DNA of 63,474 bases, the filler included, from Octopus bimaculoides (Eukaryota), in NCBI RefSeq assembly GCF_001194135.2. It is 4 parts of 4 records of this genome, joined end to end, with 100 filler letters (N's around TTAATTAATTAA, not from the genome) between each part and the next. Parts side by side here need not be neighbours in the genome. Positions count along the whole stretch, not along the records: positions 1 to 21,397 come from NC_068991.1; 3 more parts are not named here. One strand, 5' to 3'. Below the pieces are notes generated by a model. The model did no database searches. It saw only the letters and a program-made list of their open reading frames with translations, and had not been told where the DNA came from. Below are positions 4,064-21,397 of the stretch, piece by piece. Both the position numbers and the translations under genes were made by a program. The stretch's first letter is position 1. Every line of letters begins with the position of its first letter.

Positions 4064-4838
4064 AACAACATCGATGACAATAACAATAATGACAATTTCA
4101 ATGGAAATGTAATAAAGGCATTTTATTTATTCAAAGGTATTTTATTTATGATTACCTTAAAATATAAATATTAATAATTGAATAGGCAAGAATAATAAGT
4201 TCAAATATTTTTTATAAAATACAGAACAATGTGTTAAGAGTTGGAAAATATGTTGAATGTATGATTTAATAGTAATTTGCTCCTTCGTATATCTCTAATG
4301 CCTGAATTGATAAAATACATACAGCACAAGAACGTTGCTAAGTTTCTGTTGAGTGTCTTGATTAGACTTGAAGTAAAAATATCTTTGCAGATTAAAAGCT
4401 TTATGAATAGCAACTGACTTTAATCAGTTGGCCCAAGACATTATATCTATGGTGATCTCCTGATATTATTTCATAAACTCTCCTCAGTAATTACTTTTAA
4501 AACTAACAGGATATTTTGAAAATTGCTTTCTTTTTTATAAAATGGCATTATTCTAAGGCCTCAGGTCAGTCCTGATTGAGTAAACCTACAATCAAAGAAG
4601 TTCCAGCCGTGACCATCATGTTATTTTTTTAGAGTGTATTTAATACTACCTTCTCTAACATGTCCTTCTTTATTTCAAATAGTAGGACAAGAAATTTGAA
4701 AGAGATTTGGCTGCTATATCTAGCAGGTTGATTAACCATGTAGAGGCTCCTTTTTTGGGGTACATTTTCTAAATGTTTGTTTGACTTTTATGGGGTTTAG
4801 ACACAGACACAATGATACACACACACATGTATATAAAT

Positions 4839-5150
4839 GACGGGCTTCTTTCAGTTTCCGCCTACCAAATCCACTCACAAGGCTTAAGTCAGCCCGAGGC
4901 TATGGTAGAAGATATTTACCCAAGGTACCACACAGGCAGACTGAACCCAGAACCATGTGTGTGGGAAACAAGCTTCTTACCACACAGCCATGCCTGTAGC
5001 TTTCATACAGTTTCTGCTTATTTAATTCACTCACAAGGCATTGATGGGCCTAGGGCTATAGTAAAAAACACTTACCCAAGGTGCTACATAGTGAGACTAA
5101 ACCCCAAACCCCATGGTTGTAAGGTAAGTCTCTTAATCACCCAACAATAC
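4839..5150 (-). mobile_element. Two tandem 5' halves of tRNA-derived SINE family A
   Basis: Reverse complement of the family A head (GGCTTCTTTCAGTTTCC...CCACACAGCC), followed by a more degenerate copy. Confidence 0.75.
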
Positions 5151-5659: not shown

Positions 5660-6240
5660 GGCATAGGCTGTGCGGTAAGAAGCTAGTAAGGCAGCGAGCT
5701 GGCAGAAACGTTAGCACACCGTGCAAAATGCTTAGCGGTGTTTCGACTGCTGTTATGTTCTGAGTTCAAATTCCACCGAGGTTGATTTTGCCTTTCATCC
5801 TTTCGGGGTTGATAAATTAAGAACCAGTTACACACTAGGTTGATCTAATCGACTTAATCCCTTTGTCTGTCCTTGTTTGTCCCCTCTATGTTTAGCCCCT
5901 TGTGGGCAATAAAAAAATAAGAAGCTAGTTTCCCATCCACATTGTTCCATCCTCAGTCCCACTGCGTAGCACTTTGGGCAAGTGTCTTCTACTATAGCCT
6001 CTGGCTGACCAAAGCCTTGCGAGTGGATTTGGTAGATGGAAACTGAAAGAAGCCCGTCACATGTGTGTGTGTACTCCCACCACTGCTTGACGACCAGCAG
6101 TTTGGCAAAAGAGTCTGATAGAATAAGTACCGGGTTTTACAAAAAAATAGTACTGGGGTTGATATATTCAACTAAAATTCTTCAAGGCAGCACTCCAGCA
6201 TGGCCACAGTCAAATGGCTGAAAGTAAAAGAATAAAAGGA
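5660..6240 (+). mobile_element. SINE family A copy interrupted in its head by a family B SINE
   Basis: The head GGCATAGGCTGTGCGGTAAGAAGCTAG resumes at 5918. Body AGTGGATTTGGTAGATGGAAACTGAAAGAAGCCCGTC and tail CCAGCATGGCCACAGTC are present. Confidence 0.85.
5687..5917 (+). mobile_element. SINE family B (GGCAGCGAGCTGGCAGAA...TCATCCTTTCGGGGT..., A-rich tail) with 11-bp TSD
   Basis: TAAGAAGCTAG is duplicated at 5676-5686 and 5918-5928. The body recurs at ~21861, ~26205, ~34370(-), ~43600(-) and ~60380(-). Confidence 0.9.
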
Positions 6241-6379: not shown

Positions 6380-6607
6380 ACAAGTATGGCTTTGTGATTA
6401 AGAAGCTTGCTTGGAAGCCAGGTGGTTTCAGGTTCAGTGCCACTGTGTGGCACCTTGGACAAGTGTCTTCTGCTATAGCCTTGGGCCAACCAAAGCCTTG
6501 TGAGTGGATTTGGTAGATGGAAACTGAAAGAAGCCCAGCATTTGTGTGTGTGTGTGTGTGAGTGTATGTTTGTATAAATAGGTAAATATATATATGTTTA
6601 TGTATAT

Positions 6608-6675
<68 letters not shown>

Positions 6676-6685
6676 NNNNNNNNNN

Positions 6686-6754
<69 letters not shown>

Positions 6755-7110
6755 CATACACATATATCTGGGTCCAGTCCCACTGCGTGGCACCTTGGCA
6801 AGTGTCTTCTACGATAGCCTTGGGCCAACCAGAGCCTTGTGAGTGGATTTGGTAGATGGAAACTGAAAGAAGCCCGTCATGTATATATATGTAAATGTAT
6901 GTATGTGTATGTGTATGTGTGTCTTTGTATTTGTGTTTCTCTTCCTGCCACTTTGTAACCAGTGTTAGTTTGTTTACATCCCCATAACATAATGGTTCAA
7001 CGAAGGACCATTAGAATAAGTCCTGGGTCGATTCGAACAACTAAAATCCTTCAAGGTGGTGCCCCAGCATGGCCACAGTTTAATGGCTGCAACAAGTAAA
7101 AGATAAAAAA
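6380..7110 (+). mobile_element. Two further SINE family A copies separated by (TG)/(CA) microsatellite and a short gap
   Basis: Repeated GGCACCTTGG-CAAGTGTCTTCT...AGTGGATTTGGTAGATGGAAACTGAAAGAAGCCC core. Confidence 0.8.
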
Positions 7111-7413: not shown

Positions 7414-7423
7414 NNNNNNNNNN

Positions 7424-7459
<36 letters not shown>

Positions 7460-10702: not shown

Positions 10703-13700
10703 GCAAGAGCAGTGGACTAGCCATGTCTGCTGGTTCTTGGGAGGACTCATCAAATTTGACTCATGACAGAGATGAAACGAGTAATCTTGAGCTGGTTAAG
10801 AAACGTCCTCCACCTCGACCATCAGGGCCACCTCCTCGATCTGCTCCTCCAAGACCTGCACCAATCAACTTAAAAGCTACTTCTCGGTCAACTTCTCCTT
10901 CTGCTCAACCAACAACAACTGCTTCAGCAAGTGCATCTCCATCAGTTGGACATCATATAACTTCTGCTAATAAAAAGGCCCATAAAATTATAAGTTCTTT
11001 GAAACATAAAGCTGGTCTAAAATCGCCAAAGCACTTCATTAAAGATAAGAAGAAGAACAAATCCCCAATACCCTCTCCTTCGAAAGAATTTGTTGATCCA
11101 ACATTCAGTGATAAAACTGAACGCTCTGAAGAATGGCTGGCCTTACAGCAAATGCTAGAGCGAACCAAAGAAACAGTCATAAAGACACAACAGAATTTGA
11201 ATAGATTAGCATCAAAAGACGAGGGTGATAATCTTGGAGAAGACGACGAAGCTTCAGCTTCTGATAGTTCTTGGGCTGGTTTGAGAGCTAAGCAAGGAGA
11301 ATCAGAAGAAATCGATGAAGAAATATCAAATATTCCATACTCCAAAACTTCAAGCTATTATCCCGAAGACTCTACTGAAGAATTAAATGATATTAGTACA
11401 AAACAAAAATCTGAAACAAGTGGTAGTGTTCAAGACTTATTAGGGCTTGGGTTGGGAGATTTTGAATCCCCACCTGAACCGGATGATTGGCTCTCCAGCC
11501 ATAAATCTCAATTTGAAAAAGACTTTTTAGCAGCAGAAGAAGAAAATTTAACTTTATCCAACAAGAGTGTTACTGATGAATTAGTTGATAGCTTTTTAGG
11601 ACTAGACCCTTCAACTAGCCTAAAACCTTCCCCAGCTATAAGTCCCGCACTTTCTCCCGTCACCCAACTTGCCCCAGAATCTGAAGGAGACCCATTTGTT
11701 GTTCCAAAAATTATCGATCCGTTTGATGTTTCTTCAATTGTTATTAAATCCAAATCAGAATCTGACCCCTTTACTGTTAAATCAGCAGTTGCAACTCCAT
11801 CTGATCCGTTTGTTGTGACGCATGATCCTTTCGTTACATCTGTTGAGAGTGGTATTAAGTCCACTGATCCATTTGCCGTAAAAACAACATCGCCTTCAAC
11901 AGATCCTTTTGTAGTTTCTAGTGATCCAGTAACTACAACACAGTCCTATAATGTTTTAGAAGATCCATTTTCTGTTAAACCAAGTGTATCTAAAACAATT
12001 CCAGATTCACTTTCTCCAAAACCCCAAACAGAAATATCCTCATCTGATCCTTTTATTGTTTCTCCTGCATGTACAGAATCATTATTTCTGGGATCAACTT
12101 TGGGTAGTTCCACATCAGATACATTAGCTGTTTCACCTGGATTGCCAAGATCTGGTTCTGAATTATTTGCTGACACTTCTGATTTGACACCATCTAATAT
12201 TGACCCTTTCACCCCAACTAAGGATATTTTTAGCTCAACAGTTGACCCGTTCACTTCAGCTGCAGAGCTCACAAGTTCAACAAGCGATCCTTTTGCATCA
12301 ACTACAGAGGTCACTAGCTCAACAGCTGATCCCTTCTCTTCAACTGCAGAAGTCACAAGTGCAACAGTTGATCCCTTCTCTTCAACTGCAGAGGTCACAA
12401 GTGCAACAGTTGATCCCTTCTCTTCAACTGCAGAGGTCACAAGTTCAACAGCTGATCTTTTTGCACCAACTACAGAACTCAGCAGTTTAACAGGTGATCC
12501 CTTCACTTCAACTGCAGAGGTCACAAGTTCAACAGCTGATCTTTTTGCACCAACTACAGAACTTAGCAGTTTAACAGGTGATCCCTTCACTTCGACTACA
12601 GAGCTCACGAGTTCAAAAGTCGATCCTTTTGCATCACCTGCAGATTTCACTACTTCAAATACTGATCTATTTGGTGAAAACAAAGATGCATTTGAAATAA
12701 ATTCGAATATACAAGAAACGAGGACCACTGATTTTGTCTCAGAAAAGACTGAAGAAGTAAATCAGCTTGAAGACTTTTTCATTGAAAAAACTAAAGATAC
12801 TGGAGATAATATTTTCATGAATAATATTACGAAAGATAAAGAATTAGGAACTTCAGGTGTTGATCCGTTTGCTTCCTCAGAAGCATCCGTATTTACTCAA
12901 CCAAATTTAGAACTTCCTGATTTTGCCTGCTTCTCAGAATCCGAAGGATTCATTGATCCAGCTGGATCAACAGACACTAGTCTCGTTCCAGATAAAACAG
13001 ACAAGCTGGCCTCCACACCAGAACCTTATTCAACTATTTCTGAACCACTTGATTTTGCTTCAATCGCTTTAGCAATTAAAGCAGTTGAGAAAATTGCAGT
13101 AAGTTCTGATCAAAGTAAACCAACGTCTAGTCCATTCACAACAATATCTGAACCATTAGAGTTTCATACCGATGATACTTCTTATAAATTAGATAAAAAA
13201 ACTACAGACTCTTTAGAAGATAGTCCTTTTTGTACTACATCAGAACCAGTTGATATAGGATCAGTTTCTTTTGTAAAACAGGAGGATTTGCAAATTGCTG
13301 ATCAAGTAGTTGATAACCCCTTTTCTTCACAAACTGATCCTTTTACTACTATTTCAGAACCAGTAGATGTTCATGTAGAATCATCTGAAACTTCTTTTGG
13401 CTGGAATGCCTTTTCTGATCAATTTAGCTCTACTTCAGATAGTGATTTGAACACTAAAATTTCTGCTAATGATCAATCTAGTTTTGCGTTTTCTGAATTA
13501 AGTGTCACTCAAGCAGCTCCTGCTATTCAACCATTTTCCAGTTCACCATTTGAAACTGACTGGCCGAGTTCAGTCTCAGACTCAGCAGTTAAAACTGACA
13601 TAGCTTTCCCAGGGGTAGGAAGTGATTTTAGTTCTGCAAATATGTCTGTGCCAACATCTGAAGATGCATTTCCAATGGCAACTGATGCGACTGGTGATAT

Positions 13701-16633
13701 GTTTGCTGCACAACCAACAGACATAACTATGACAACAATACCAACAACAACATCAACAACAACAAAAGACAGTTCACTGCTGACAATGGAAGTAACAGAT
13801 TTAGCCGCAAGTAGCGCAGAAACTGATACATCCCTGACGAAGACTAGTGCTGATTTCTTAATCAGTGATGAAGCTTTCTCAACAACATTTGGTAGTCCAG
13901 TTTCTTCAAACACGACCACTGAAATCCTTGCCCCAGATATATCACATCCTACAAATGCAAATAAACCTTTTTCACTCATTGATGACAGTTTTGCATCGGC
14001 ATCACCAATGCTTGACTCTTCAGGAGAAAATTTGCATTCTTTAACAGATCCATTTGCTGAGGAAGTAAAATCAACTTGTTTCTCAGATTCTGGTTTCCCT
14101 ACAACAAACTCAGCTTTCCCTATGCTGGAACCGTCTGCTGTACCTACAACGGCACCTTTCTCGGAGTCTTCATTTTCTATCTTGGCTCCACAAACAACTC
14201 CTGTTCCAAGTTCCTTTTCAGCAATGGATTCACAAGAAGTCCCTGATATTTCCAAATCAGAAATCAGTCAGATTAATCCTTTTGACAACATTGATCCGGA
14301 AACTTCTATCCACGTAAATGTTAAAAATCCATTTTCAATGTTTGAAACTATTGAAGATGATTCACCTTTTGGGCAGTCTGTTGATAATAAAGCTAATAAT
14401 ATGGGTGCATTAATACAACCAGAAATATCTGAGGATATTGCTTCTAAATTAAATGCTTTCCTACAGCCTGATATTACTCCTGATCCTGCTCCTGTAGCCA
14501 GTAGCCCTAACATTACTAGTTCATCTGGAGAGGGTGCAGATTCAAACATTAACTTATTTACAGAATCAAGTGTCAATCCGTTTGTAGATCAAAATGATAC
14601 TCCAGCTGTTGCCACTGCCGAATTTTTTGATGAAGATTTCTTCAATACAAAAACTGCTGAGAAAATTGCTGAAGGGGATTCAGCGAAGAATGCTTGGGGG
14701 GCAATGGAAACTTTTGATAAAGACTCGACTTTTAATCCTTTCCAAAATGATAACTTTGATGCTGAAAATATCCCCCAAAATATATTAGATGACATGGACA
14801 GTCAAGAACTGACAAATGAGCAGAAGAACCCATTTTTGTCTAGTGATTTTAATGCAACTGCTATGATTGGAGAGACAACTATTAATCCATTTTTGAGTCA
14901 GGTAGAAGAACTTGAAAAAGCACAGAGTTCATTGTCAGACAATCTCAGTATTTTCCTAGGTAAAGGGGAAGATTTGCCAATTGATCCAACTGACTTGCCT
15001 ATAGATGTTTTTGACCCTTTCAAAACCATTGAGCCTGATGATATTCCAGAAACATCAGGTGCCATGGCCGCCACACATACAGCAGCTGTCGATTCAAGTG
15101 ATGATGACAAAGAATCACCAGATATGGATGATAATAAAGATGCTTTTAAACTGACCATACGAATGAGGGAACCAGTTGAATCGGGGCCATCAGTTGCTCT
15201 ACCGCCTCCTCCCAAAGTGCCCAAATCTCCACAAATGGCACCACGTATAAACCCATTTGATCGAGATTCTCCACCGGAAGAAAACTTTGCAAAATTCGAA
15301 GTGATGGAAACTGAAGAAAAAGTAAAGGAACCAAGAACTGAGACTCAGATGAGTGTTTCTACGACAGAGAGTAGCACACCTGAAGAGGAAGAAAAACATC
15401 TTGAACCCCTTGAGAGTTTTAACCCCAAAATGGAAGAGGACGGATGGACATTAATGCTTCGACAGCCAACGAAGAAGAAGCTGACTGGTAATCGTTTCTG
15501 GAAGACAATTTATGTGAGATTGGTCCAACAAAATGATGGACCTGTTTTGAAACTTTACAATAGCAAAGATGATAAAGATTCATTTCAAGAGCTCCCCCTT
15601 CAGCCTTGTTACTCTTTGTCTGAAATAGCCCTACAACATTATGATCAATATGGAAAGATACACACATTGAAAATTCAGTATGTTTTCTATCGTGAAAGAG
15701 TTGGAATTCGAACAGAAAAGATTACACCAACTTTTGTGAAAAACATGAAACCAAAAGCTAACATGATTTTAGATCATGCTCCACAGATCTCAGAGCTTCT
15801 TAAATTTGGTTCACTAAGTGAACAGACAATTATCACCTTTGTACAAGAGGTGGAAGATGCATTAATGGCAATTGTTGCTCACAGAGAAAAAACATTATCA
15901 TATCAAAAAGACGAAGTTATTGTTGATGTAATCGATGAATACAAAGCACATATTAACACGGGAGGCCATATTGTCGCCCAGAAAGCCAGAGTAAGAATTT
16001 TTTGTTTATCTTTTGTAACAGGTATGCCATTTGTAGAACTAGGAGTTAATGACAAACGGCGCAAAGGGAGAGAAGTTGTTGGTCGACATGATATCATACC
16101 TATCAAAACAGAAGAGTGGATCAAGCCGGAGAACATTCAGTTTCATTGTTCTGCGAAGCCAGAAGAATACGAAAAGGATGGGACCATTAAATTTCATCCA
16201 CTGGATGCATGTCATTTTGAACTAATGAGGTTCCGTATTCGACTGAGAGATAATAAAGAGTTGCCTTTGATAGTAAGAGTATTTCGAAGTATCAAAGAAA
16301 GACATGTTGAATACCGGTGTGATGTTGTGTGTACCGGTTACCATGCGTATAGTAAAAAACATGGACAATTTCCATGTGAAGACATTGAAATAAGATTTCC
16401 AATTCCTGATTGCTGGATCTATTTATTTCGTTATGAAAAGCGATTTGGCTATGGATCCTTTAAATCTGCCACCAGAAAACCAGGGAAAATCAAAGGGCTA
16501 GAAAGGTTGACAATGATGACACAAAGTGGCACTAATCCAGCTCTTCTGGAAGCATCTGTAGGCACAGCAAAATATGAAAATGTTTATCATGCAATTGTAT
16601 GGCGGATTAGTAGATTACCAGAAAGAAATCAAG
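10703..16633 (+). CDS. stnB: Stonin/Stoned family endocytic adaptor, giant coding exon: disordered DPF/NPF-rich N-terminus, stonin-homology domain (from ~15442) and most of the mu-homology domain (from ~15900)
   Basis: Open frame of ~1980 codons. Polypyrimidine tract plus AG acceptor at 10701-10702; first in-frame ATG at 10723 (GCCATG). C-terminal motifs GWTLMLRQPTKKKLTGNRFWK, KIHTLKIQYVFYRERVG, VELGVNDK, FHPLDACHFELMRFR and GTAKYENVYHAIVWRISRLP are typical of stonins. Donor G|GTTAGT at 16633/16634. Confidence 0.93.
12244..12663 (+). repeat. Coding tandem repeat: 10 x 42 nt (14 aa; consensus DPFSSTAEVTSSTA)
   Basis: Exactly 420 nt. Each unit starts with DPF or DLF, and several units are near-identical at nucleotide level. 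Confidence 0.95.
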
Positions 16634-19600
16634 GTTAGTTTGATTTTTCAACGAATTTTAATATAGCTCTCTTTAATTTTTATTTCAGCATTAATTTCCT
16701 TTTATCTAACTCCAAAAATTGTAATTTCCTCGACTGTGATTGCACACAATATGATATATTCTAAAATACTTCACCATTTTTCCTATTTTATGTCTATAAC
16801 CAGCATTTTATGATTTGATAGGGAAATATATATAGGATTATATATTAATCTTTATGGTTGTGTTGAATCAAATATTTATTCCTCTTAAACAATAAAGTAA
16901 CAAATGAAAGCTTCTGTTTATCAATTTAGTTTCACAGTAACTTTCTCTTTACAGAAGGGAAGCTTGAAAGCTGATTGTTAAATGAGTTCACGTTTAACTT
17001 CATTTCAACCTTTATTACTTCAATTTTATGTCAGCTTAATATCTTGAAAAGATGTGTTGAGTAAAGTTTTACATGCAGGACAAAATTGTTAGATGATATG
17101 ACTTAATGATGGAGAAAAACAGATTTTATTTGTCTGAAATGAAGCACTAGCAATGAAACAAAACAAAACAAAACAAAAATTTATTGTTCACACGGCTGAT
17201 AATAAAAATAACATCAAAGCAGATGATGATGATGATGACGACATTGATGACCACCACCATGCCATGGAATATAGGTGTTCTCAAAAGCCACTATCAAAAT
17301 CCATGCTCTTAGCATCTTCCTTGTACTATCTTTCTTGTTTGAAATTATATTTCAGTGCTCAAAGTTATACCAGGGTAAAAGTACCATAACCTGAAAATAT
17401 TAATCTATTCAAAACATTTCCAACAGTCATAAAAATTACAGATAGAGAAATTATAGATAGAGAAAGCTATTTTTGGTTTATATAAAGTTTTATTTTTGTT
17501 TTATGAAAACGCTCACTATATTTCTGAAACTATTCTCATCTTTATCTGTTTCCTTTGCTAAGATGCAATGCTTAAATATAGACTTCTGTGAGGAGTACCA
17601 TTCCCACACAACTGGTTTAAATTCAATCATTTCCTGCTTAAATGAGATTTATTTTTGTTTTTATCAAAAGTATCTTGGTTCTTCTCAAAATTCTTTACAT
17701 CAAAGGCATTCTTCAGTTACCAAGGATTAAGTTATATAAGTCTATAAGCGTTCATATCAGTTTGAACAGCTTAACCTCACAACTTTATCTCTGTTATGCT
17801 ATTTTGCTTTTTACATTTTCAGCAATACCATTTTGATTCTGTTTATCACTGTTATATAACAACCAGACTTCCCTTTGAAGTTTCAATAAGAACTTATATA
17901 TACATTTTCCATCATGTGGTGTTCAAGACATTTGGTGGGGTCGGACCACTGACTGCAAGATCCCTGTCTTCACCAGCAGCTTGCCTAGCAGAGGTAACTG
18001 GTGAAGCTCATGAGGGCACTTGGCTGTTCTAGCACATCATCCTCACCATCACCCACGGCAACGCTGCAAGGGTGCTGGCATGCCTCAAAAGTCATTAGAG
18101 AAGTTTCCCAGCACCCCAAAATTGTCAACCTAAGGTGTTGGATTGTTTTTGTTTTTTTCTGTTTTTCTTTTTTTTTTTCTCATCTCACTCTTGTGTGTAT
18201 AGTTGAGTTTTATACAGCTGTTATAAAAATAACCAGTTTTCACCTCGCTAAAAATAATAATACTAGAACGTCTGAATTTTTTAAAATAACAGGTTCAGGT
18301 CATTTCCCCNNNNNNNNNNNNNNNNNNNNNNNNNNNNNNNNNNNNNNNNNNNNNNNNNNNNNNNNNNNNNNNNNNNNNNNNNNNNNNNNNNNNNNNNNNN
18401 NNNNNNNNNNNNNNNNNNNNNNNNNNNNNNNNNNNNNNNNNNNNNNNNNNNNNNNNNNNNNNNNNNNNNNNNNNNNNNNNNNNNNNNNNNNNNNNNNNNN
18501 NNNNNNNNNNNNNNNNNNNNNNNNNNNNNNNNNNNNNNNNNNNNNNNNNNNNNNNNNNNNNNNNNNNNNNNNNNNNNNNNNNNNNNNNNNNNNNNNNNNN
18601 NNNNNNNNNNNNNNNNNNNNNNNNNNNNNNNNNNNNNNNNNNNNNNNNNNNNNNNNNNNNNNNNNNNNNNNNNNNNNNNNNNNNNNNNNNNNNNNNNNNN
18701 NNNNNNNNNNNNNNNNNNNNNNNNNNNNNNNNNNNNNNNNNNNNNNNNNNNNNNNNNNNNNNNNNNNNNNNNNNNNNNNNNNNNNNNNNNNNNNNNNNNN
18801 NNNNNNNNNNNNNNNNNNNNNNNNNNNNNNNNNNNNNNNNNNNNNNNNNNNNNNNNNNNNNNNNNNNNNNNNNNNNNNNNNNNNNNNNNNNNNNNNNNNN
18901 NNNNNNNNNNNNNNNNNNNNNNNNNNNNNNNNNNNNNNNNNNNNNNNNNNNNNNNNNNNNNNNNNNNNNNNNNNNNNNNNNNNNNNNNNNNNNNNNNNNN
19001 NNNNNNNNNNNNNNNNNNNNNNNNNNNNNNNNNNNTTTTGGTATATTTTATTTTTTAGAGTTGAGAAAAATAAATTACTTTTAAATCATGGAAAACCTAT
19101 CTTGAAAATAAACTTTATGGTGATTCCTACTTCTATATTCAAATGACATCGGAATCAAACTTCTCTCATCACTGCAGAGGGATTGGTGAAGTCAGTACAT
19201 GTAATAAAGGAGAGTCTACTCAGTTAGTTAGACATGCTTTCTTTACAAACAAGCCACACACTCAGACAAAAGAAATCGTTGTAGTACCAGAAATAGCAGC
19301 ATAGTGCTGGTCAAAATGCCTTGAGATATTTAGTTCTATTTTGGTATGGTTTGTGTGCAAGATCTGCCAGAGTTGATTTTACTTGCCATCACCCTCTAGC
19401 ATCAATCAATAGTGGTTAAATCAATTGAACCTATCCTCTACCATATAAAGTTGTGAAGTTGTGTCAATGTGATAACGTAATTGTTTTTAATTCAATTGCT
19501 ATATCAGCAGGTTGGATGGTTTTACAAATTTATACAATATACTGTTAGTGGTGTTTATATATAGTAGAGGCAGGCCACAGAAGGTGTGGAAGCAATTGGT

Positions 19601-20049
19601 GAGGCCCAGATCTCAATGTTGGTGGGGGTAAGGTCTTACAAGACTGAGTGGAAATGCAAAGTAAAATTTTGCAAACCTATCAGACCTGTGCTAGCATAGT
19701 AAACGTGGAATATTAAAAGGACAACTATTATTATTTAAGACATCACAAAGTATCCAATATCATGATGTTGTTGATTGAAGCTATTGTGTCTACAAGGGTT
19801 TTATACTGTCTGTCAAGTCACTACAAGGGCCTTAGACAGACAGTACTTTATGCAATATGTGTGCAGTCCTAAGTAATGCCAATTTTTGCAAAATTCCTAG
19901 ATTGTAGGGTATTTCTAAAGTTTCCAGATGTTTCTTCAGGTTGGGTGGTATTGAACCCAATGCTCCGATGACAATAAAATGAAAAATGGTATAAATATTT
20001 AACTGATTTCTTATATATATATATATATATTTACTTATTTATTTTCCAG
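16634..20049 (+). other. GT-AG intron of the stonin gene (contains an N gap)
   Basis: GT at 16634-16635, AG at 20048-20049, reading frame preserved across the junction. Confidence 0.9.
17904..18098 (+). mobile_element. Second degenerate CRE-like RLE endonuclease fragment (intronic)
   Basis: Translates HHVVFKTFGGVGPLTARSLSSPAACLAEVTGEAHEGTWLF*HIILTITHGNAARVLA; TAG replaces the Q of WLFQ. Visibly homologous to 8207-8525(-). Confidence 0.72.
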
Positions 20050-20351
20050 GTGCTTACAAAACTCATCTTTTCACCTTGAGACTCGACCTAGGACCCCACG
20101 ATGAAATACCCGACTCCCTTGAGATGGTCAGCGATGTGAAGTTTACCATGCCAGCTAGCACTGTTTCCAAATGCCAGATTCGATCGATATCATGTGGCAA
20201 TCCTACCCCACCAGAGAAATGGGTACGCTATATAGCTCACTACAATTATAAAGTTGCTATCGAGCACACACTCGAAGGGAGTATTAAGAATGTACCAGAA
20301 ATTGATGTCCAAATGGCAGCAGAAGGAAATGACTCCGAATCAGATTCGTAG
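20050..20351 (+). CDS. stnB: Terminal coding exon of the stonin gene (end of the mu-homology domain)
   Basis: Acceptor TTATTATTTTCCAG|G at 20049/20050. Phase 1 matches the upstream donor and gives RNQG-AYKTHLFTLRLDLGPHDEIP...KWVRYIAHYNYKVAIE, the typical stonin MHD ending. Stop TAG at 20349-20351. Total CDS from 10723 is 6213 nt (2070 aa). Confidence 0.92.
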
Positions 20352-20804
20352 TCTGAACACAAAAAAAGGCTAAATCGGTGAATGGCAACTCACTAATTTA
20401 CACTGTTATTACTTACTTACTTACTACTAAAAGGACAAAAGACAGTTACTACTACAACTACTACTTCTGTTACTAACAACTTTTCCACGCAACCAAAATA
20501 CCCCCAGTCTCAAAACTAGACATTTTTGATAATCTATACATGATGCCTTCCATAGTGAAGCAAGTTTTAGATATTTGTAAGGAGAGAAAAGAAAAAATAA
20601 TATAATAACCTGAAAATTATTTGTAATGTAAAGCTACCTGTTGTTGTTGTTGTTGTTGTTGTTACTGGTTTATTTATATATATTTTTTTTTAATTGACAG
20701 AACAGACTATGAATTTCAGTTATTGTAACTGAAATACTTGAGAGTACACGCTTTAAATTTTGTGACTAGCTTCAATTTCCTTTCATACATATGTGTGAAT
20801 GCAT

Positions 20805-20837
<33 letters not shown>

Positions 20838-21057
20838 CGTGCGAGTGTGTGTGTGTGTATAGGTGTGTGTATATATGCATACACATGCACATACAGATGT
20901 GTGCATATATGTGGGTGTGCATATATATANNNNNNNNNNNNNNNNNNNNNNNNNNNNNNNNNNNNNNNNNNNNNNNNNNNNNNNNNNNNNNNNNNNNNNN
21001 NNNNNNNNNNNNNNNNNNNNNNNNNNNNNNNNNNNNNNNNNNNNNNNNNNNNNNNNN

Positions 21058-21088
<31 letters not shown>

Positions 21089-21397
21089 CATATATATGAA
21101 TGTGTATGTATATCTATATAAATTTATGTATGTGTGTGTATGTGTATACCTATATATATATGATATATATTTAAATACATATACATATATACGTATACCT
21201 ATATAAATATGTATACGTATCTATACATATACACACACATATATATATATACATATATACATATACATATATACATATGTATACATATCTATATATATGC
21301 ACACACACATTTATATATATATATATACATATATACATATACATATATACATATGTATACGTATCTATACATATGCATATATATATATATATATATA

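Follow-up and report, generated by a model that had tools for sequence, protein, structure and literature searches.

An unsplit octopus stonin gene with a Stoned-A-type N-terminal module and the likely origin of the dicistronic stoned locus

Among textbook cases of dicistronic mRNA in eukaryotes is the stoned locus of Drosophila. Of its two products, Stoned-A (StnA) is described as carrying a Lys-rich domain, a coiled coil that binds the C2B domain of synaptotagmin-1 (Syt-1), and DPF repeats (PMC3373503, PMC3393740, PMC2174325); the binding is reported for the fly protein's coiled-coil domain (PMC3373503). StnA is also described as having "no homology outside Insecta" (PMC2174325, PMC3373503, PMC3393740). 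Stoned-B (StnB) and other stonins share a stonin homology domain (SHD), a C-terminal mu-homology domain (MHD), and a disordered N-terminal region with NPF and proline-rich motifs. The same layout is found in a gene of Octopus bimaculoides on the plus strand of the window analyzed here, a stretch of 63,474 nucleotides joined from four parts of assembly GCF_001194135.2 (positions 1 to 21,397 are from NC_068991.1). However, its pre-SHD region is much longer than that of fly StnB (about 1,570 aa) and holds a StnA-type module and a DPF array, both absent from fly StnB. The octopus gene is very probably an orthologue of the stonins (Stoned-B / stonin 2 / UNC-41) in their ancestral, unsplit protostome form, from which the fly dicistron arose by splitting. 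No statement that StnA originated from a stonin N-terminus, or that it has non-insect homologues, was found in the open-access literature; the evolutionary reading is apparently new, and the gene appears to be a stonin with an unrecognized ancestral architecture.

One reading frame from the N-terminal module to the mu-homology domain

The original prediction described a single stop-free frame of about 2,070 aa. The length stands, while the stop-free frame does not: frame 1 stays free of stops between 10639 and 16635, a TAG at 16636 closes it, and a splice is needed, so that the figure evidently came from two exons spliced by eye. The coding sequence (CDS) consists of 10723-16633 and 20050-20351, which sit in different genomic frames (1 and 3) and are joined at a phase-1 GT-AG junction, with the donor CAAG/GTTAGT after 16633 and the acceptor TTTTCCAG before 20050. 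The spliced CDS of 6,213 nt encodes 2,070 aa. Its first in-frame ATG is at 10723, and a strong acceptor (tttgtttcag) lies approximately 20 nt 5ʹ of it (about 10702). The features of the gene, all on the plus strand, are as follows.

10703-16633, +: giant coding exon, with residues 1-1970 and the first base of codon 1971
10723-10758, +: mollusc-conserved N-terminus MSAGSWEDSSNL, residues 1-12
10798-10863, +: proline-rich tract KKRPPPRPSGPPPRSAPPRPAP, residues 26-47; putative SH3-ligand region
10966-11064, +: basic motif ANKKAHKIISSLKHKAGLKSPKHFIKDKKKNKS, residues 82-114
11128-11217, +: StnA-type helix EEWLALQQMLERTKETVIKTQQNLNRLASK, residues 136-165, the core of the conserved module
11266-11322, +: degenerate W-x-x-[FL]-acidic motif SSWAGLRAKQGESEEIDEE, with no F in octopus
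11428-11607, +: acidic/leucine blocks VQDLLGLGLGDFESPPEPDDW...ELVDSFLGLD (LLGLG / VDSFLGLD), residues 236-295
11689-12870, +: DPF/DLF array with 19 of the 22 DPF motifs, residues 323-714
13315-15258, +: cluster of eight NPF motifs in a disordered region, residues 865-1510; putative EH-domain ligands
15442-15705, +: SHD core (GWTLMLRQPTKKKLTGNRFWK ... KIQYVFYRERVG), from residue 1574, by BLASTP against the Strigamia stonin
15877-16633, +: first part of the MHD; the whole domain spans residues 1719 to about 2046
16634-20049, +: phase-1 GT...AG intron of 3,416 nt, including an assembly gap (18310-19035)
20050-20351, +: final coding exon, with the end of the MHD and an acidic tail; stop codon at 20349-20351

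To judge by its homologues, the C-terminal half is an ordinary stonin. The best of them carry the names stoned-B or stonin, and identity to invertebrate stonins across SHD and MHD is 44-63%. No Pfam model exists for the invertebrate SHD; this domain was called by BLASTP and by homologue names, and its start was set by colinear BLASTP to the Strigamia stonin from GW.M.LRQP.KKK.TG.RFWK onward. The PDB matches of the MHD are AP-1 and AP-2 mu subunits. PPPRP tracts lie beside NPF and DPF motifs in the disordered N-terminal region, in which DPF occurs 22 times against 0.78 expected from composition (shuffled maximum 4 in 2,000) and NPF eight times against 0.37 expected. Thus, the dense DPF array, NPF cluster, SHD, and MHD that had been predicted are all detected, and the predicted motif positions hold as well, with LKSPKHFIKDKKKNKS inside 10966-11064, EEWLALQQMLERTKETVIKTQQNLNRL from 11128, and the RPPP tract at 10798-10863. 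The N-terminus has counterparts in P0001 and P0234 (MSAGSWEDSS), in the gastropod (MSTGSYDESSNL), in the mollusc sequence P0305 (MSGSFDESSS), and in Mya arenaria (MSKQSFDDSSNL), and none in arthropods. The acidic/leucine blocks recur in P0234, the gastropod, the annelid, and ticks (LLEEFGFGIEEPP).

An internal promoter, internal initiation, or proteolysis could still make one open reading frame (ORF) give rise to separate N- and C-terminal products. Such a reading does not conflict with the proposed ancestry and would suit the long disordered linker (residues about 720-1500), which could be cleaved or hold internal starts, yet it is unlikely. No stop or frame break interrupts the 1,970 codons of the big exon, and the uninterrupted 5.9-kb ORF is kept in a second cephalopod-like sequence (P0234/L001). 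Tick-like and myriapod-like contigs likewise hold the whole ORF on one intron-less contig. Moreover, in the comparison of octopus with the squid-like contig L001, the proportion of nonsynonymous differences (pN) is below that of synonymous differences (pS) in every region, linker included: pN rises from 0.05 for SHD/MHD through 0.21 for the N-terminus to 0.42 for the array, and pS is 0.75-0.95. The whole ORF is therefore under coding constraint.

Within L001, an out-of-frame N-terminal ORF of 182 aa is followed by 1,820 codons, with a 40-nt overlap (1120-1159). It was considered as a frameshift or second cistron and rejected: P0234 reads straight through, there is no in-frame slippery heptamer, and the break is a 1-nt assembly or sequencing error. 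Two antisense ORFs inside the octopus coding exon, of 271 codons (11948-12761, -) and 246 codons (13529-14267, -), are most likely by-products of biased Ser/Thr/Asp/Pro-rich coding sequence.

Relationship of the N-terminal module to Stoned-A

The octopus protein and StnA share an order of features: a basic motif (in octopus a candidate counterpart of the Lys-rich one), an EEW..F...KTQ..L helix, a W-V-x-F-acidic motif (in non-dipteran StnAs), and DPF motifs. The StnA strings that the original prediction gave are right to within one residue, as the D. melanogaster protein (P0002, 850 aa) starts MLKLPKGLKKKKKKSKK and contains EEWAKFKALTSGVDSILHKTQDELDRI. No StnA family was found in Pfam. Profile hidden Markov models (HMMs) built from StnA alone find the expected octopus segment in the correct register without reaching significance. 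The dipteran StnA HMM gives a domain E of 0.011 and a full-sequence E of 0.38, and the 62-sequence pancrustacean HMM a domain E of 0.033. A check of this kind had been proposed for the octopus N-terminus; it lands in the right place at E 0.03-0.4, and for this reason the insect-only profile was set aside as a decisive test in either direction. A search with the N-terminal 330 aa of octopus against a 5.8-billion-protein index returned a single match, P0001; this index gave no stonin longer than about 900 aa, and the unsplit proteins were found by other routes.

The homology is carried instead by intermediates. Genomic loci were fetched for stonins identified through the MHD. All of these loci have the module 5ʹ of the SHD and on the same strand; the barnacle locus has a clear StnA. 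Four copies are listed here.

Plakobranchus (gastropod): KSEHWQAFLQMQDRIKQNVLKTQTSIGKL
Capitella (annelid): DSDEWKAFEAMQSRITESVKNMQEKVV
Rhipicephalus microplus (tick): GEEWRFFEQLTQRVQDTVQKTQTTLSKIKESS
Caerostris (spider): TEEWQFFQQLSMKVQDTVQKTQTTLNKLK

The module aligns without gaps, with 16 residues from W to KTQ in octopus, P0001, gastropod, annelid, tick, barnacle, and Diptera. Its 42-residue profile window corresponds to 11110-11235. The profile comparisons, computed at Z=1, are as follows.

Dipteran StnA HMM against tick: E 1.6e-11, 30.7 bits
Dipteran StnA HMM against spider: E 2.7e-8, 20.2 bits
Lophotrochozoan HMM (4 sequences) against tick: E 8.4e-10, 25.3 bits
Lophotrochozoan HMM (4 sequences) against spider: E 1.4e-10, 27.8 bits
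Pancrustacean StnA HMM (62 sequences) against ticks: E 1.1e-19 and 2.5e-13, 57.3 and 36.5 bits
Pancrustacean StnA HMM (62 sequences) against Strigamia: E 1.1e-8, 21.4 bits
Pancrustacean StnA HMM (62 sequences) against myriapod-like P0301 and P0306: E 3.4e-8 and 4.5e-7, 19.8 and 16.1 bits
Chelicerate+myriapod HMM against the whole octopus protein, residues 124-177: E 1.2e-11, 31.5 bits
Chelicerate+myriapod HMM against P0305: E 2.7e-13, 36.8 bits
Chelicerate+myriapod HMM against P0234: E 2.1e-10, 27.4 bits
Chelicerate+myriapod HMM against the gastropod: E 1.2e-9, 25.0 bits

Because chelicerate and myriapod stonins match both pancrustacean StnA and octopus, the octopus N-terminal module is, on sequence grounds, homologous to the N-terminal part of StnA. 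The EEW..F...KTQ..L.RIK helix with which the StnA coiled-coil domain starts is, via these intermediates, found in octopus. The lophotrochozoan homologue of StnA that had been predicted is thereby borne out, at E 1.2e-11 with no equal in 20,000 shuffles. In composition-preserving shuffles, none of 20,000 reaches the observed scores (null maxima of 11-12.5 bits against 25-32 bits observed). The alignment of lophotrochozoan with pancrustacean profiles by hhalign, which uses no bridge, gives the same register at P 1.6e-4.

The module is also specific. Its HMM finds exactly one match per locus, always 5ʹ of the SHD on the same strand, including a spider locus on which it was not trained (6.9e-12). 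When 1.84 billion representative proteins were searched with a 42-column profile, 111 matches at E<=1e-3 came back; those inspected are StnAs or long module-bearing stonins, bar about six apparently spurious low scorers, with the mid-ranked matches judged by the N-terminal motif only. The module is present as well in the 'STNB-like protein' of the bivalve Mya arenaria and in an annelid-like protein, both of which were retrieved via the MHD only. AlphaFold2 models residues 136-165 as a single helix (pLDDT 88-97) with disordered flanks.

Unguided alignment by MAFFT (alignment A2) recovers three collinear motifs: basic, helix, and W-x-x-F-acidic. The basic motif reads AHKIISSLKHK in octopus, MHKITKGLKKK in orthopteran StnA, and MNFIKKKIKGSKK in myriapods; its candidate counterparts are the Lys-rich N-terminus of StnA (MHKITKGLKKKKK / MLKLPKGLKKKKK) and the start of chelicerate and myriapod stonins. 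MAFFT aligns octopus AHKIISSLKHKAGLKSPKHFIKDKKKNKS, which is low-complexity and internal (residue 82), with the Lys-rich StnA motif M[LH]K[LI].KGLKKKKK, and the HMM matches of ticks and centipede to pancrustacean StnA reach across this motif. The W-acidic motif reads SWVNFEESEG in tick, TWVSFDQEQ in P0305, and RWVGFEEGAG in orthopteran StnA; the degenerate octopus version is SSWAGLRAKQGESEE (residues 182-196).

The EEW...KTQ segment might instead be a chance or convergent amphipathic helix among recurring short linear motifs (basic, DPF, and NPF), with no StnA ancestry. The scores of insect-only StnA profiles against octopus (E 0.03-0.4) would fit this, as would the independent expansion of DPF arrays (here by a 42-nt repeat) and the report that UNC-41 has only DPF motifs in common with StnA (PMC3393740). 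However, the legs via chelicerate and myriapod intermediates score 16.1-57.3 bits against shuffle maxima of 11-12.5 bits in 20,000 trials, the W-to-KTQ spacing is identical, three motifs are collinear, there is one match per locus and always N-terminal to the SHD, and the stonins that bear the module were found independently through the MHD. These intermediate-sequence statistics largely refute a chance helix already and leave it very improbable.

Beyond the module, octopus and StnA differ. The octopus segment is the N-terminal part of a stonin rather than a separate 5ʹ-cistron protein, and no stop precedes the SHD. It has about 85 extra leading residues (MSAGSWEDSS plus the Pro-rich tract), lacks the KE-rich coiled-coil extension, and has DPF units that form a different, 14-aa tandem repeat. 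At the DNA level, a 42-nt unit recurs in tandem about 10 times (12235-12658, 75-83% identity); 84- and 126-nt periods are also readable, and the repeat encodes 14-residue DPF/DLF units (..TSSTADPFSSTAEV..). Gastropod and annelid orthologues have only three DPF motifs; the octopus array is therefore a cephalopod expansion. As a lineage-specific local tandem expansion whose unit differs from that of StnA, the array was rejected as a sign of StnA ancestry, and the parallel drawn between it and StnA in the original prediction falls away. Chelicerates and myriapods retain one or two DPFDTSFV copies. The StnA block DIFDT.YID..TSGE.KLAY.P.SP is not present in the octopus protein. The near agreement of the summed StnA and StnB lengths (850+1260) with the octopus ORF is likewise a coincidence, given that other unsplit orthologues have 1,275-1,473 aa.

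Single and split genes across protostomes

In the molluscs, annelid, tick-like sequences, and centipede sampled outside Pancrustacea, the module and the SHD are encoded in one frame. Apart from octopus, single ORFs are found in the following.

P0234 (cephalopod-like): 2,037 aa
P0305 (mollusc): 1,275 aa, reading into the conserved intron
Gastropod: first exon, from Met through the module to the SHD
Capitella: big exon
P0335 (tick-like): 1,473 aa; seven independent contigs carry its uninterrupted 4,422-nt ORF, which starts with MNFIKKKIKG and reaches the MHD
P0306 (myriapod-like): 4,059-nt uninterrupted ORF on a 4.4-kb contig
Strigamia maritima T1JEA4: 1,451 aa

The unsplit arthropod stonins, all uncharacterized database entries (Strigamia T1JEA4, Rhipicephalus sanguineus KAH7972172.1, and tick-like P0335), resemble octopus in having basic start, helix, W-acidic, DPF, NPF, SHD, and MHD in one ORF. 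Unlike octopus, they begin at the basic motif (MNFIKKKIKG), have 1,350-1,470 aa, and carry StnA-like DPFDTSFV motifs but lack a large tandem array of DPF. Mollusc and annelid stonins (the Mya 'STNB-like protein', Plakobranchus, and Capitella) share with octopus the module, the intron after ERN[QE]G, and the single ORF, and in molluscs the N-terminus; they differ in having only 2-3 DPF motifs and a pre-SHD region of about 600-900 aa. Public annotation splits the mollusc and annelid gene into partial models or names it an AP mu subunit. In Capitella, a separately annotated 435-aa 'gene' (L003:2658-3770), 4.8 kb upstream of the stonin exon, is acidic and has a WVNF motif and a long C-terminal Pro-rich tract; it looks like the missing first stonin exon, matching the octopus Pro-rich tract before the basic motif. 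In the tick R. microplus (GCA_030522445.2), three overlapping frames at L005:900-1400 were rejected as biology: one break coincides with a T8 run, and neither P0316 nor the transcript-like P0335 is interrupted. Indel errors caused the R. microplus gene to be called in pieces, and the spider locus L004 is similar; R. sanguineus KAH7972172.1 is continuous.

Within Pancrustacea, the split is visible in the DNA of three species. In the barnacle Pollicipes, ..LERELLQS is followed by TGA, 43 nt, and an ATG that opens MASGNPFLEM. The wasp Diachasmimorpha has ..LLESELMEK, TAA, 54 nt with more stops, and an ATG opening MDSKGGNPFLMDD. The mayfly Cloeon has ..LLEKEIIG, TGA, 5 nt, and, in a different frame, an ATG opening MDFAQGGNPFLMSDEDY. 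The mayfly spacer (L008:3620-3645) reads TGA tcaaa ATG, and its 5 nt suggest termination-reinitiation rather than an internal ribosome entry site. Databases list 'protein stoned-A' as an entry of its own for Orthoptera, Phasmatodea, Collembola, Lepidoptera, and Diptera.

Several database models (P0238, P0246, P0271, P0307, and P0224) show StnA and StnB fused. As unsplit pancrustacean genes, those of Diachasmimorpha (XP_063993687.1) and Cloeon (CAB3370331.1) were rejected, as the DNA shows a stop and a separate ATG that the models bridge with an invented intron (L007 3626-3722; L008 3548-3661). The fused models of Pieris rapae (XP_022113235.2), Hypothenemus (KAL1506697.1), and Amphibalanus 'stoned-B' are very likely artefacts too; Pieris brassicae has separate StnA and StnB entries.

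The tick counterpart of the break region falls after DPFDTSFV (residue 266 of P0335) and before EEMSNPFLVD (residue 330). Both tick sequences, P0316 and P0335, have an in-frame Met just before the first NPFL (..EEMSNPFLVD.., residues about 325-335), where pancrustacean StnB begins (M..GGNPFLMDD). This Met is not shared by spider or centipede and may be a coincidence.

The polarity of the change could be the reverse: with the homology real, a separate or dicistronic ancestor might have been fused in molluscs, annelids, chelicerates, and myriapods, each on its own. The root state is not directly observed, as no module-bearing outgroup was found, and a fused model from Triops could hint at lability. 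Even so, this is very improbable. It takes at least two or three independent fusions at one junction against one fission. The split state is observed only inside Pancrustacea, all animals outside this group for which stonins have been described to date make them from monocistronic genes and have no StnA of its own (PMC2174325, PMC3393740), and the fused wasp and mayfly models are annotation artefacts. Given that Chelicerata and Myriapoda fall outside Pancrustacea, a single fission before the common ancestor of barnacles and insects accounts for all the states seen, where the opposite polarity would take several fusions. The survey thus places the fission in the pancrustacean lineage, and StnA appears to be no insect orphan. 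The comparison of fused and split loci that had been suggested finds a single ORF in molluscs, annelid, tick-like, and centipede-like sequences and a split gene in barnacle, mayfly, and wasp. With single ORFs outside Pancrustacea and stop, spacer, and ATG in three pancrustaceans, the predicted origin of the insect dicistron from one ancestral protein is upheld. What needs correction is the word "fusion" for the octopus gene, which keeps the ancestral state rather than joining two parts.

Several points weigh against descent of StnA from such an ancestral stonin. Direct similarity between octopus and insects is non-significant (E 0.03-0.4), and the case is transitive over a module of ~45-90 residues. 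The basic motif is low-complexity and weak evidence taken alone, and the "StnA half" beyond the module cannot be aligned between octopus and StnA. The StnA repeat unit DPFDTS[IF]A..L.PGK.ELK.LE.EL was not found in octopus, the DPF units of which are unrelated (DPFSSTAEVTSATV and others). That octopus makes a single polypeptide is predicted here from genomic sequence, Strigamia T1JEA4 was checked at the level of the protein model, and the taxa of Logan contigs are assigned by similarity only. Triops cancriformis CAG4651580.1 (P0287), a branchiopod model of 1,638 aa seen at the protein level only, runs from a StnA-type N-terminus to NPF, SHD, and MHD and lacks the ..ELK.LE.EL end; it may be an artefact or a real pancrustacean exception. 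Finally, the "ancestral" state is shown for protostomes only. The library-wide search found no module-bearing deuterostome, cnidarian, or nematode protein, and this search also missed the gastropod and annelid copies.

Exon junction, surroundings and significance

The frame-1 exon stops in the middle of the MHD at ...RISRLPERNQG, and the frame-3 exon goes on with AYKTHLFTLRLDL... Against the Strigamia stonin, this junction is ungapped (RLPERNQGAYKTH vs RLPKEGQGAYTEH; ..RLPERNQG/AYKTHLF..), with 53% identity and E 7e-176 by BLASTP. The big exon alone matches Pfam Adap_comp_sub (PF00928) with 119.8 bits (E 1.7e-34, profile positions 2-189), and with the final exon added, the match grows to 167.2 bits (E 5.9e-49, positions 2-257 of 259). 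The intron has the same position in P0234, P0305, Plakobranchus, and Capitella. The phase-1 intron after ERN[QE]G falls at 16633/20050 in the window, at about 13590/16300 in L002, at 11620/11660 in L003, and in the C-termini of P0234 and P0305. The rest of the CDS is nearly all one giant exon in cephalopods, P0305, and the annelid, and the gastropod has extra introns.

Of the four N runs in the window, none is in a coding exon, and the one within the coordinates of the gene (18310-19035) is intronic, 1.7 kb past the donor and 1 kb before the acceptor. Because the splice is canonical and phase-compatible, the junction ungapped, the Pfam match completed, and the intron position shared, the gap has cost no coding sequence. 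That the long ORF is an assembly artefact joining unrelated pieces, for instance across this gap, is refuted for the coding sequence and next to incredible, as the gap is intronic, the coding exons are free of N, the canonical splice sits at a conserved position with an ungapped junction to other stonins, and P0234 and L001 have the same architecture; an unseen alternative exon inside the gap is possible.

Upstream of the gene lie dispersed repeats of about 155 nt with 62-82% identity (4818-4979 (-), 5918-6072, 6399-6553, and 6738-6892), which are probably SINE-like elements. A second repeat element stands beside (TCA)n runs (3657-3727/9561-9631 and 3978-4062/10107-10191), and upstream poly-Asp 'ORFs' are (GAT/ATC)n microsatellites. 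Long (TA)n/(TG)n/(CA)n tracts occur at both ends of the piece (1-320, 6550-6700, 7414-7450, and 20770-21397); they flank short N runs (6676-6685, 7414-7423, and 20930-21057) and are the probable cause of the assembly breaks. Scans of the window against Rfam and for tRNAs gave no matches.

Stonins are clathrin-adaptor-like sorters of synaptotagmin, and the octopus protein is predicted to be one polypeptide of 2,070 aa with, in order, the mollusc N-terminus, Pro-rich tract, basic motif, 30-residue amphipathic helix EEW..[FL]..M...KTQ..L..L, W-acidic motif, DPF array, NPF cluster, SHD, and MHD. Its basic motif, helix, and W-acidic motif would correspond to the N-terminal third of Drosophila StnA, that is, to the Lys-rich domain and the start of the coiled-coil domain. 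Along the pancrustacean stem, such a single ORF would have been cut between DPFDTSF-type motifs and the first NPFL motif by a stop codon, with a new initiator 5-54 nt further on, giving a dicistronic stnA-stnB mRNA.

In this protein, the MHD is expected to bind synaptotagmin C2 domains, and the helix may add a second contact, with C2B, by analogy to the report on the StnA coiled-coil domain. DPF and W-acidic motifs would recruit AP2 ears or appendages, a role that for the W-acidic motif derives from the WVxF motifs of stonin 2 (PMC3393740). The NPF motifs would recruit the EH domains of Eps15 and intersectin, as suggested by the literature on StnB and stonin 2 (PMC3373503, PMC3393740), and the Pro-rich tracts may bind SH3 domains, in line with the description of stonin N-termini (PMC3393740). 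Together, these parts would make a multivalent sorter in synaptic-vesicle recycling; synaptotagmin binding and sorting by the octopus protein are inferred from orthology. A more tentative suggestion, which may well not hold, is that the helix is an ancient protostome stonin element with an MHD-independent synaptotagmin C2B contact, and that in Pancrustacea a cut in the ORF separated the two contacts, allowing one mRNA to supply an AP2-binding StnA and an EH-binding StnB in different amounts.

For the family, descent from an unsplit stonin would give the dicistron a concrete origin, in one fission that is older than the last barnacle-insect ancestor and falls between DPFDTSF and NPFL motifs; crustaceans, as seen in the barnacle, already carry the split. 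The orphan status of StnA would end, its N-terminal module being the N-terminus of single-ORF stonins in molluscs, an annelid, ticks, a spider, and a centipede. A conserved 30-residue helix that is not in Pfam is now defined and is a candidate synaptotagmin binder. The 42-nt repeat illustrates how, inside a coding exon, replication slippage or unequal crossing-over may enlarge arrays of AP2-binding motifs. As a by-product, several insect StnA-StnB fusion models are recognized as artefacts, and the gene proves to be wrongly divided in several models from molluscs, annelids, and chelicerates. If the helix does provide a second synaptotagmin contact, StnA biology would be open to study as a stonin domain in any protostome, and fly stoned mutants with neither cistron would be expected to be rescued by stonin from a tick or octopus or by an engineered fusion of StnA and StnB.

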